A DNA stretch of 63,209 nucleotides, the filler included, from Olpidium bornovanus S191 (lineage: Eukaryota; Fungi; Olpidiomycota): NCBI GenBank assembly GCA_017911155.1. It is 28 parts of 28 records of this genome, joined end to end, with 100 filler letters (N's around TTAATTAATTAA, not from the genome) between each part and the next. Parts side by side here need not be neighbours in the genome. Positions count along the whole stretch, not along the records: positions 41,489 to 45,844 come from JAEFCI010003229.1; 27 more parts are not named here. One strand, given 5' to 3'. The stretch's first letter is position 1. Every line of letters begins with the position of its first letter. The translations under genes and the position numbers were made by a program. Positions 41,489 to 45,944 of this stretch are shown piece by piece. The notes below the pieces were generated by a model. It had not been told where the DNA came from. It searched no databases and saw nothing but the letters and a program-made list of their open reading frames with translations.

Positions 41489-42558
41489 GACGCTCGGCCC
41501 GACGAGCCCCAGCCAGACGAGCACGTAGGTCCGGTCGGTGACTTCGACTTTTCCGGCGTCCGCCGCCGCCGCCGCCGCCGCCGCCGGAGGGCGCCCCGCC
41601 TGGCGCATGAGGGCCGCGGTATCGCACGGGTGGAGGTGGAGGAACGGCACGCCCAGGTGCGGGTGGTCCGCGAGCGTCAGCGCGCCGCCGAACCCCTGCC
41701 GCCGCATCGCCTCGCGCGCCGGCTCGGGCGCGGGGGAGACCACGTCGTCCGCCGTCAGCGGAGAGCCGTCTGGGGGGCCCCGCCCGCCCGTCGCAAAACC
41801 AAAAAAAAAAGAAAGTCCCGGTTATTATTTTGTGACCCGCAAAATGACCCGCAAAAAACCCGAGCGATCGCGTCGTTCACCGGCGGTCGACTTTTGTCGC
41901 CAGGACGAAATCTCCGAGGGGAAAAATCAAAAAGTCCTTACCTGACCGCGCAGCCGACAGGAACAACGCCGGAACCTGGTACGACGCGATGTAGACCACG
42001 TGGTAGCTTACCGTGGCCCATTCGTCGTCCTGGCCCCCCCCCCCCGGCCCAACCGGAAAAAGAAAATTGACGCGCAAGAAATTGCCAACCGTCAGCGGCA
42101 ACCTGGGGCAAAGCGCTTTGCGCTTTTGATGTGTCGGGGAAAAGCTCAGAGTTTGTTTTTTTTATTTGCTTCCTTACCGATCCCTGGAGGAGGGACGAAG
42201 GGTCGTGCTCTTCATGCACGGAGGTGCCAGCGGCTGTCGCAAGCTGCGCGCCTTCGGAGGAGGAGCGCCCGCTCCGCGGTGCCCGCATCCTGGCGGGATT
42301 TCTGACGAGGTAACGAGGGGGCCCGCCTGCGGGCGCCGCGGCGAACGTCCACTGGCCTTCCTCGGACGTCCTCTCCAGGTTCCGCAGGAACGCCTCCGCG
42401 CACCGTGCGAACTCGTCCTCGGAGAGCAGCGGGTAATTTTGCAGCGGCGTGCCGGCCGGCGAGCCCGCGCCAGACCCGCCGCTCCCGGCCGCCCGCCCCT
42501 GCGGGCCCTGCTCCGCGTGCGCGCCGGAATCCCCCGGCGAGGTGCTTATCGGCGACAT
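41489..42558 (-). CDS. ATG10: Atg10 E2-like domain; in frame with the upstream RhoGAP
   Basis: YPLLSEDEFARCA, YHVVYIASYQVPALF, DGSPL, DHPHLGVPFLHLHPCDT (catalytic Cys near 41625) and YVLVWLGLVG. Nearest in-frame ATG is at 42558. Confidence 0.88.
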
Positions 42559-45500
42559 GAGTTGGCCGGCGTCGAACAGCACCGCGTCGGCCGGGGCGGT
42601 CGTTTTCTTGTCTTTTCCCATCTTGTCAATGTCCGCCAGTATCCTCCTCTCCGCCTCCCTGCCCGTCGAGTTCGGCGCCAGTTGGAGATCCAAATTGGAG
42701 CATCCAAAGCTCCTCTTCCGCTCCTGCCGCGCGGCCTCCTCCAGCTGTATCACCCTCCTGTCCAGGCTGGCGTCTCGGGCGGCCGACGGCCGCGCGCGCA
42801 GCGGACCGAAAATCAGGTCGTGGTGGGTCAGGATGTCCTTGACCGCCCGTTGCGGGTGGCGGTCCAACAGGGTCGTCGCGGTCTCCGTTCCCTGCCGCAA
42901 AAATATGTTGCCGAGCACGTCCGCCGCCGCCGAGCAGAATCCCGACTCCGACGTCTCGTCGTGGGACTTGAGGCTGTTGGGGGGGGGGGGGGGGGGGGGG
43001 GGGGGTGGGGGGGGGGGGGGGGGGAATGGGTCTTCAGTTGGAGGACGTTCATACTTTTCTTCCTTTGGTGTGATGAGCTAGTTTTGGCGTTGTTTGCCCC
43101 ACCTGACCAGGTGCGAGCATACCGCATCCAGCGTCCAAAAGTGCGGTTCCGGAAGAGTGGCAATTAGGTTACGAAGCGACGCCACTTTGGCATCCTGCTC
43201 AACGTCGTCCGTGTCTAAATAGGGAAATACGGGAGGAAATGGGCCCCCTTCCTTTTTTTACTGTCCCTGAATCCTTCGCGTGGCGTGAATACCGTCATTA
43301 GGCCCGAAAAAACGTACGGGACAGATACAAAACTTTGATGGTCTCGTAGATTTCGCTCGTCAGCAGGCAGTCACTGGATTCGAATTTGAAACCATTTTCC
43401 GCGTTAGTTGGTGGGTTTTGGCGGGATCACCAGAAAAAAAAAAATCGCCACCGGTCGCTCTGCAAAACAAAAGAAACACTCACGGCAGCTCTCGAAAGAA
43501 CACGACGCACACGGCCGCCACAGCGGATATGTCGTAGGTTCGGAGCATTTTGAGCGTGATCTTTTCTTCTGAAAATAATAAACAGAAATATAAGAAGTGT
43601 TAAAAAACGGGAAAAACGCGCCCCCCCCCCCCTGCATCTCACACCGGGATTGGGGCGGGGACAGATATTACACGAAAAGAAAACGGTGAGGCGCGACGAA
43701 CGCCGGGGGGCTCCTACCCGATGGCCGGTTAAGCTCGCTGCGAAGGCTGTAAGCTTCAAACACGCGCGAATCCGCTGACAACCACGCGTTCCGTTTTTCT
43801 TTTTATTTGTTTGTTTTTTATTTAAAACACCAGAGGAAACAAGCCGCCGTCGCGCTTACTCAGCCCCGGAAACAAGCGCGCGCGAGGAAAAAAAAGAAAT
43901 GCTACTTTAAATACCATCCATAGACTTGCTGTCCTTGTTGATCGCAGAGATGCACTTCTCGACCAGCGGCGGTACCCGCGCGCCGCACGCCTTCGACAGC
44001 TCTTCCAGCCTGACGCCGAATATCTGGTCGACGGCGCATCCGTGGTAGCGGCTCTGATAGAGCACAGGCGGCGGCCTGCGCCGCGGCGCCGAGGCGACCG
44101 TGAGCTCGACCTCCGACAAGGGACGACGAGATCGCGCGTGTGGACCCCCCTCCAAAACCCGCTCCCCACCCCTTCCCCCCTCAAACCTACCGCGTATATC
44201 CTGTGCGATACTGTTCGATTATGGCGTTCACGTCTTGCATGGGGTTGAACACCTGTACGCCCCGGAGGCCCAAAACGGAAAAGGGAGGTATCCGAGAGGG
44301 GAGGACGGGCACGTCGTTCAAGCGTTTTTTTTTTTTTTTTTTTTTTTTTTAGGGCGGCTGGCCTGGGGCTCGCAGCAAGAAAACAGTTCTAATTTTTCAC
44401 CTCCAAGTAAGTGACTGTCCGCCCGGAAGTCTCCGAGACGACCGGCAGGATGCTTGCTTGCAAAGCCGCTAGTTCGCAGAACCCCACTTTCGCGATCGCG
44501 AGCCGGTCCATCTCCAGATCCTGCATGGAGCCCAGGTGTTTATACACCTCGCCGATGAGGGCGGTGCGGGCGGTGTCCGTTTTTTTCACGGCCGTTCGGT
44601 ACTGCAGATCGGCCTAGCGTACCAACGGGGTTGCGTAAGCGAAAGAAAAGAAGAAAAAAGGAATTTGGCCGAAAGCGCCGGCAGCGAACGAACCCGTTCG
44701 GCCTAGACGGGTCCAATGGGGGTGGGAAGGGGGCGGGACCTGTTAGCTCCCTCCAGCATACTCGGGGGAACAAAAAACGCAAAGAAAAGTCGCAGTCGTC
44801 CTCGTACCTCCCGGCGAGCCGTTTTATGGGGAGGTTCGCCGGCGGCTGCCGGCGGTTTTTGGTACTGTGCGAACGAGCCAACGTATCTCGCTTAGCCGGA
44901 TCGGACCAGGACGGGAATTTTGCCGGCGGACGGATCGGGGCGGCAGTGGCTTGCCTGGTAATATGAGTTCGCGGCCGAGTCGAACCGATTTCCCGGACCG
45001 ATGCGCCGGAGGTACCCCTGGTCAAGAAGATCCTGGCCGACGCCTTGAACCTCGTTGTCGTCCCGTAGCCTGGCGAGGCCCCCTCCGCCCGACTCCAGCC
45101 AGAGCGCCAGGTCCCGGCCGCTGATGGCCCCGCGGAAGGTCCCAAGAAGCGCGTAGGGCGCAACGTCCTGTGACGGGATTTCGCGGGCCATCCTGCTCAG
45201 GAAGTCCGAGATCCCTTCTTGGGTATACGTCTCGCCGCCGAGCTTTATAGGAACGTCCGCCGCTGCCGGGGCCGACGAGGGCGGAGAGGTCGAGTGTCCG
45301 TGCGAGACCGCGGTGGCGGCGGCGCGGGCAACGGAGCTGAAGACGATTGAGAGCTGCCGAAGTCTTTCCCGAGGCGGCGGCTCCGTGGGCCGTGCGGCCG
45401 TCCCGTGGCCCTCGGCCGCTCTATCGTCTTGAACCGCACCGCCGGATTTCTGTGACATGGTCGGGCTGGACGACGCCGCCGCCGCGTCTACCTCGGCCGA

Positions 45501-45751
45501 TTTTTCAGCCTTGTCTGCCTCCTCGCACAGCGCCACGTACGCCTGCTTCGCCCTGTTCAGCTCGTCAAGCTGTCTGCTGTAATTTTTGAAGGCGTCCCGC
45601 ACGAGCTTCGCCTCGGCGTCGACTTTCGCGTATCGCTTCGCAAAGTCCTCGAGCGGTACCACGACATTCTCTCGAAGAGAAGTCGCGTGACTCTGGTACG
45701 AGGCGGCGAGCTGCACGCTTTCTTCGCGCAACGCCTCAAAAGCCTGATCAA
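42559..45751 (-). CDS. F-BAR/FCH-DEP-RhoGAP protein (Rgd2/Rga8-like), 5'-partial; no stop before Atg10
   Basis: F-BAR helices (HATSLRENVVVPLEDFAK), DEP (ISGRDLALWL...VGQDLLDQGYLRRIG), QIFGVRLEEL...VPPLVEKCI, YDISAVAAV...FRELP, LRNLIATLP and DRHPQRAVKDILTHHDLIF. Confidence 0.88.
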
Positions 45752-45753
45752 GT

Positions 45754-45835
<82 letters not shown>

Positions 45836-45944
45836 ACCCCGCCANNNNNNNNNNNNNNNNNNNNNNNNNNNNNNNNNNNNNNNNNNNNTTAATTAATTAA
45901 NNNNNNNNNNNNNNNNNNNNNNNNNNNNNNNNNNNNNNNNNNNN

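Follow-up and report, generated by a model that had tools for sequence, protein, structure and literature searches.

A continuous reading frame from a RhoGAP domain into Atg10 in Olpidium bornovanus: a candidate lineage-specific gene fusion

In the deposited genome sequence of Olpidium bornovanus S191 (GCA_017911155.1), one continuous reading frame joins a complete RhoGAP domain to a complete module of Atg10, the E2-like enzyme for Atg12-Atg5 conjugation. This fungus is a root-infecting, obligate intracellular plant parasite that is unculturable and phylogenetically pivotal. The locus was found in a stretch of 63,209 nucleotides (nt), filler included, which is called the window here and whose positions are used throughout. 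Positions 41489-45844 of the window represent JAEFCI010003229.1, a single deposited contig of 4,356 nt. The piece in the window is identical to the whole record, and the junction is thus no artefact of the spacers between joined parts. Coordinates prefixed with L001 refer to the exact reverse complement of this piece. The frame probably reflects a fusion, specific to the O. bornovanus lineage, between an Rgd2/Rgd3-type RhoGAP gene and ATG10, with a translated flexible linker connecting the two predicted modules.

The two modules meet inside one exon. On the minus strand, the frame of the RhoGAP C-terminus contains stops only at 43080 and 41940 and is open in between. The junction exon (42973..42178, 796 nt) is preceded by a CAG acceptor. 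With its first base it completes the codon begun in the exon before, and its 3' end coincides with a codon boundary at the donor TCG/GTAAGG (the slash marking the exon border). Its translation reads ...DRHPQRAVKDILTHHDLIFG...(linker)...NYPLLSEDEFARCAEAF..., the order of parts being ...LGNIFLRQGTETATTLLDRHPQRAVKDILTHHDLIFG, 121 linker codons, and then NYPLLSEDEFARCAEAFLRNLE... The next two exons, 42029-41942 and 41769-41489, encode YHVVYIASYQVP and HLHPCDT and thereby contribute the YHVVY..SYQVP motif and the HPC motif, whose cysteine codon is located at 41626-41624. A first-pass annotation, made from the DNA without database searches, had described this single exon, its fitting splice phases on both sides, and the motifs in the two exons downstream. 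All of these features were recovered, and homologs additionally back the splice sites.

The openness of the linker is weak evidence by itself, because 121 stop-free codons are expected with a probability of ~9% from its base composition (10% T) and two of the three reverse-strand frames are open across it. Codon usage is the stronger evidence and argues that the linker is translated in the frame of the RhoGAP domain. The GC content at codon positions 1, 2, and 3 is 0.67, 0.59, and 0.86 in the linker and 0.67, 0.47, and 0.77 in the exons; introns have a GC content of ~0.54 overall and lack periodicity. At third codon positions (GC3), values remain between 0.77 and 0.93 from end to end of the junction exon, with constant phase. 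A codon-usage log-likelihood was trained on the homology-supported exons against intron trinucleotides. Per codon, three segments of the linker scored 0.49, 0.39, and 0.42, and its off-frames -0.24 to 0.30. The exons, scored by leave-one-out, ranged from -0.04 to 0.53 (two micro-exons of 57 nt near 0, the rest 0.13-0.53) and the introns from -0.84 to 0.01. None of 2000 shuffles matched the value of the linker (z = 5.2). With codon usage of this coding-like kind, neither intergenic DNA nor a hidden intron nor a frameshift can be accommodated in the linker. It also upholds the earlier observation that the exon contains neither a frame change nor a stretch resembling an untranslated region (UTR).

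Alternatively, the two proteins could be separate despite the open frame if unrecognised splicing, through a terminal exon or a non-canonical intron, or polyadenylation ended the RhoGAP mRNA. The gene does use loose donors (GTGGGG, GTATTT, and one GC donor), so that a weak site could escape notice. However, a hidden intron in the linker was considered and rejected, because no donor-acceptor pair is present even at the loose pattern GTRNGN and no intron candidate exists upstream of 42403. The introns of this gene are 90-194 nt long and AT-richer, nothing alike is seen in the linker, and the codon usage of the linker again argues for translation in the RhoGAP frame. Termination of the RhoGAP mRNA by such means is highly improbable.

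The linker also contains, at 42682-42708, two tandem copies of a 14-nt unit that is nearly self-complementary (TTGGAGCATCCAAA), together encoding FGCSNLDLQ. As the copies of 14 and 13 nt sum to 27 nt, the frame is kept, whereas one 13- or 14-nt duplication alone would shift it. The repeat may have arisen by chance or may be a trace of remodelling of the tail frame.

The gene was modelled on the minus strand with 12 exons that encode 923 amino acids without a stop, and the model is open at both contig ends. Every acceptor is YAG, and all donors are GT with the sole exception of the GC donor at 44954. Alignment evidence for the exons comes from P0002, a fungal protein of 732 amino acids with an FCH domain at residues 36-103, P0003, which resembles the RhoGAP part, and P0004, a stand-alone relative of Atg10. 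They are as follows, all on the minus strand and with the junction exon divided into its three parts.

44955..45756, minus strand: exon 1, truncated at the contig edge and a homopolymer and ending at the GC donor CAG/GCAAGC; codes for F-BAR-like coiled-coil helices, a stretch of low complexity, and, at ~44955-45146, a DEP-like domain
44808..44864, minus strand: exon 2, 57 nt, YQKPPAAAGEPPHKTARRE; placed by splice sites, and the P0002 alignment spans both junctions
44401..44613, minus strand: exon 3, second part of the F-BAR-like coiled coil; splice sites and P0002 alignment
44191..44252, minus strand: exon 4; splice sites and P0002 alignment
43915..44075, minus strand: exon 5, in which the RhoGAP domain begins; splice sites, Pfam, and alignment to RhoGAP structure sequences
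43718..43774, minus strand: exon 6, a micro-exon with the putative arginine finger (CGC, 43766-43764) in DSRVFEA
43484..43568, minus strand: exon 7, RhoGAP; splice sites and alignment to solved RhoGAP domains
43318..43373, minus strand: exon 8, RhoGAP; splice sites and alignment to solved RhoGAP domains
43103..43214, minus strand: exon 9, RhoGAP; splice sites and alignment to solved RhoGAP domains
42802..42973, minus strand: junction exon, part 1, C-terminal RhoGAP helices up to ...THHDLIFG; alignments to P0002, P0003, and ARHGAP15
42439..42801, minus strand: junction exon, part 2, the stop-free linker of 121 codons, whose codon usage is coding-like in the frame of part 1, with in-frame ATGs at 42621 and 42558
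42178..42438, minus strand: junction exon, part 3, N-terminal half of Atg10 (YPLLSEDEFARCAEAFL...), ending at the donor TCG/GTAAGG
41942..42029, minus strand: exon 11, Atg10, DDEWATVSYHVVYIASYQVPALFLSAARS; the alignment to the P0004 reading frame spans both junctions without an indel
41489..41769, minus strand: exon 12, catalytic part of Atg10 with the HPC cysteine (TGC, 41626-41624), cut by the contig end

The last exon breaks off at ...WLGLVGPSV, ~19 residues short of the C-terminus of P0004. The GC donor belongs to a GC-AG intron at 44865-44954 (minus strand; CAG/GCAAGC...CACAG), and its junction, SYYQ/YQKPP, is backed by the colinear alignment to P0002.

The upstream module resembles RhoGAP proteins of the Rgd2/Rgd3 type. 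Pfam RhoGAP (PF00620) matches model residues 413-541 with 50.0 bits (cut-off 24.5), and the RhoGAP part aligns over the full length of solved RhoGAP domains (E = 8e-13 for ARHGAP15, 3e-11 for ARHGAP12, and 1e-8 for yeast Rgd1). The arginine of DSRVFEA (codon 43766-43764) aligns with the catalytic arginine of DGIYRVSG in ARHGAP15 and ARHGAP12; the domain is thus predicted to be complete and to retain its arginine finger. Model residues 167-591 are colinear with residues 185-618 of P0002 (30% identity, E = 9e-46), and this alignment spans nine exon junctions, that of the GC-AG intron included. In Saccharomyces cerevisiae, Rgd2 and Rgd3 possess an F-BAR domain with an embedded DEP domain, followed by the RhoGAP domain (PMC7851877). 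The Olpidium model follows the order of these proteins and of fungal orthologs such as P0002: coiled coil, DEP-like region, more coiled coil, RhoGAP, and a disordered tail of ~110-120 amino acids. The Olpidium model has a DEP-like match at the place where Rgd2 and Rgd3 carry their embedded DEP domain, a weak match that with 17.5-19.3 bits (E = 0.001-0.004) stays below the Pfam cut-off of 32.7. FCH had no Pfam match in the 90 N-terminal residues present, the FCH region itself falling past the contig edge. The F-BAR-DEP-RhoGAP label of the first-pass annotation is consequently sound for RhoGAP and for the colinearity with P0002; its DEP element is below threshold, and the F-BAR element is assigned on homology only. 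A homolog search with the RhoGAP part matched only the deposited, mis-modelled protein of the same contig. P0002 itself lacks a Pfam RhoGAP match at E <= 0.01 in residues ~415-620 and is divergent and rich in insertions where the arginine finger would be expected. In contrast to that of Olpidium, this GAP domain may be degenerate.

RhoGAP homology to P0002 and ARHGAP15 stops at THHDLIFG. P0003 continues ~30 residues beyond this point, with weak tail similarity that reaches ~42706. P0002 ends ~110 residues past its corresponding THHEAIFA motif, and a disordered tail as long as the linker is thus normal for the RhoGAP family considered here. The known members of the Rgd2/Rgd3 type stop after this tail, whereas the tail of the Olpidium gene is stop-free and runs into Atg10.

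The downstream module matches Pfam Autophagy_act_C at model residues 722-922 (89.9-91.2 bits, cut-off 24.4), covering profile positions 1-185 of 193. RhoGAP and Autophagy_act_C hence both exceed their Pfam cut-offs in one predicted product when the spliced model is searched, as the first-pass annotation had proposed, and DEP is the domain that does not. Apart from YHVVY..SYQVP, the module carries HPHLGVPFLHLHPC, and HLHPCDT is identical in P0004. This relative (236 amino acids, from Logan run SRR31067992) has an open reading frame free of introns, is covered entirely by Autophagy_act_C, and matches the spliced product of Olpidium from end to end with ~50% identity. Neither intron position shows an indel relative to P0004, which confirms the splice sites flanking exon 11. 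The module also aligns, from its residue 4, with residue 6 onward of a sequence that we take to be human ATG10 (E = 1e-20), a label that is a lead only. The E2 module appears to be complete with its HPC cysteine intact, and activity in Atg12 conjugation is predicted. Compared with P0004 and human ATG10, it differs in having ~720 residues of another protein upstream in the same frame.

Atg3, the E2 enzyme for Atg8 lipidation, has an E2 core and an HPC motif in common with the Olpidium module, and the only sequence matches of the module in the PDB were weak hits to Atg3 chains (E = 0.007-0.9). However, the module has the size of Atg10 (~210-236 amino acids) and not that of Atg3 (~310 amino acids), and its similarity to the putative human ATG10 sequence is much stronger. 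Other autophagy families in Pfam, including the N- and C-terminal domains of Atg3, gave no match at E <= 0.1. As no Atg3-specific domain was found, Atg10 seems the better name. An AlphaFold2 prediction of P0004 made without an alignment was unusable (predicted local distance difference test score, pLDDT, of 36).

RhoGAP proteins and Atg10 are normally products of separate genes, as the first-pass annotation had stated: P0002 ends after its own tail, and P0004 is a stand-alone protein. P0004 is among several points that weigh against a fusion in Olpidium. This nearest relative of the Atg10 module, and the only close one found, has its own ATG with in-frame stops upstream. Two in-frame ATGs in the Olpidium linker could likewise yield a separate Atg10. 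The contig was assembled with MEGAHIT, in the manner of a metagenome, from material that was not axenic, and it is truncated at both ends. The MAKER annotation, which had Trinity transcripts at hand, models no fusion, although its models are clearly wrong. The support for a fusion lies at the level of DNA only, and homolog searches returned no transcript-derived protein of O. bornovanus. Finally, the suggested search for the same architecture in other organisms retrieved no protein spanning both modules among 1.84 billion representatives, the poorly conserved junction exon being a query of low sensitivity that missed even P0004 and obtained two weak RhoGAP-tail matches. Metagenome scans with the junction exon and with the Atg10 alignment detected no relatives, and neither the literature searches nor the protein searches that were run uncovered an in-frame RhoGAP-Atg10 architecture. 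Because no relative with a fusion was found, the fusion appears to be specific to the O. bornovanus lineage.

The contig that encodes P0004 (L002) contains two in-frame stops 26-27 codons upstream of the Atg10 methionine, so that Atg10 is a protein of its own in that organism. P0004 starts with MLSRREF, and its methionine aligns with the first leucine of LLSEDEF in Olpidium, where the homology begins without a methionine. Within positions 1-266 of L002, another frame lacks stops between the edge of the contig and a TGA that precedes the Atg10 ATG by 42 nt. In the Atg10 frame, the residues directly ahead of the methionine (LPNHP-M) resemble the end of the Olpidium linker (LQNYP-L), and a good acceptor-like site (ctcttcag) precedes the ATG by 17 nt. 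Such hints would fit a neighbouring gene upstream (possibly for a RhoGAP), an alternative upstream exon, or a 5' UTR. When positions 1-225 of L002 were examined as a RhoGAP tail, no frame showed significant similarity to the Olpidium linker and Pfam gave no match; the codon-usage test is powerless in this region.

The stand-alone state of P0004 bears directly on a second alternative, according to which a nested transcript or an internal start at one of the linker ATGs makes the main working Atg10 and the full fusion is a minor or accidental read-through product. The ATGs at 42621 (gacaagATGgga) and 42558 (caactcATGtcg) are located 61 and 40 codons upstream of the Atg10 homology, and the former has a good context, with A at -3 and G at +4, whereas that of the latter is poor. 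In addition, the Atg10 of the relative begins exactly at the start of the homology, and the similarity of the tail to other RhoGAP proteins fades by ~42706. An Atg10 initiated in this way would bear a low-complexity N-terminal extension of 43-64 residues. On the other hand, the RhoGAP frame is stop-free, and any RhoGAP mRNA must therefore be translated into Atg10 sequence. Moreover, the whole stretch is coding-like and lacks AT-rich DNA, such as the introns show, that would resemble a promoter or UTR. An internal start as the main source of Atg10 is possible but rather unlikely. It does not exclude the fusion either, because a separate Atg10 could be made from 42621 or 42558 as well, the latter start having been suggested in the first-pass annotation.

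A third alternative is an assembly artefact, either a MEGAHIT mis-join of two genes or a stop codon lost by base error. The genome was sequenced on the HiSeq2000 (Illumina) from non-axenic zoospores, assembled with MEGAHIT, and then binned, and its BUSCO completeness is 75% (PMC7865070). Besides the fragmentary state of the assembly, the contig itself is short and terminates in a homopolymer of 85 nt. Look-ups gave no independent assembly of the locus: exact searches for the unspliced open reading frame with three start variants found none on record. However, a mis-join would need to land in frame with coding-like linker sequence on both sides, and the contig is homogeneous in its base composition and in the style of its introns. 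An indel error was rejected as well. It would shift the phase of GC3 and codon usage, which is constant, leaving an indel in the assembly unsupported; HiSeq data contain few indel errors outside homopolymers, a point that also speaks for the fusion. If a stop is restored by a single-base change, the rest of the linker is still coding-like, and no 3' UTR, promoter, 5' UTR, or other intergenic DNA appears between the genes. The deposited DNA thus encodes one frame, and we consider an artefact very unlikely.

Very long homopolymers are present in non-coding parts of the gene. On the plus strand, these are C x85 at 45756-45840 at the contig end, G x46 at 42979-43024 in the intron immediately before the junction exon, and T x26 at 44325-44350 in another intron. 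The contig breaks within the longest of them. Since the HiSeq2000 uses four-colour chemistry, the homopolymers are not a poly-G dark-cycle artefact. They may be a real trait of introns in Olpidium and may have contributed to the fragmentation of the assembly. A scan for tRNA genes found none.

The deposited gene models were produced by MAKER using predictors trained on Rhizopus, plus Trinity transcripts (PMC7865070). A model of 410 amino acids (BJ554DRAFT_6037; window 43902-45667, L001 178-1943) has correct F-BAR/DEP exons and then drifts out of frame. A second model, of 158 amino acids (window 43298-42626, L001 2547-3219), ends at an out-of-frame TGA, and all exon combinations that give its length read the large exon in the frame in which the poly-C tract becomes poly-proline. 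The stop of this model at 42626 was considered and dismissed, because its frame lacks RhoGAP homology in every reconstruction. ATG10 is absent from the deposited annotation of the contig. Being mis-framed, the models neither support nor contradict a fusion. Surveys of autophagy genes that use the deposited proteome would score Atg10 as absent in O. bornovanus, and presence/absence results would be distorted.

The description of the locus as a novel fusion protein is upheld for the continuous coding frame, the coding-like linker, and the lack of a plausible intron; the fused product would follow from these features of the sequence. In such a scenario, the stop codon of the RhoGAP gene would have disappeared along with any intergenic DNA, and a translated, mostly low-complexity linker of ~120 residues would now lead from this gene into the complete ATG10. 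One primary transcript with 12 or more exons would give rise to one polypeptide, in which the RhoGAP and Atg10 E2 modules would fold and act independently on either side of a flexible tether. The Atg10 part would still take Atg12 from Atg7 and hand it to Atg5. A gain from co-localisation with a membrane-binding scaffold is possible but speculative. The earlier proposal, in which the scaffold would tether Atg12-Atg5 conjugation to curved membranes, is speculative too. Conjugation of Atg12 to Atg5 does not need membranes and is normally cytosolic and constitutive, and gene fusions are often neutral. That the fusion is both expressed and adaptive, with the F-BAR/DEP/RhoGAP scaffold taking Atg10 to sites of Rho/Cdc42 activity or to curved membranes, is quite doubtful. 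If true, Atg12-Atg5 conjugation would be spatially coupled to cell polarity or membrane remodelling, and the gene would be a naturally occurring 'Rosetta stone' that connects the Atg12 system with Rho-GAP signalling.

The two modules are familiar ones, and the novelty of the locus lies in their in-frame combination. Should no fused protein be made, the locus still reveals that the annotation misses ATG10 and mis-frames the RhoGAP gene. If a fused protein is made, it would represent a natural experiment in which Atg10 tolerates a large N-terminal partner, and it would hint at a functional link from Rho-family signalling or membrane-curvature scaffolds to Atg12 conjugation.

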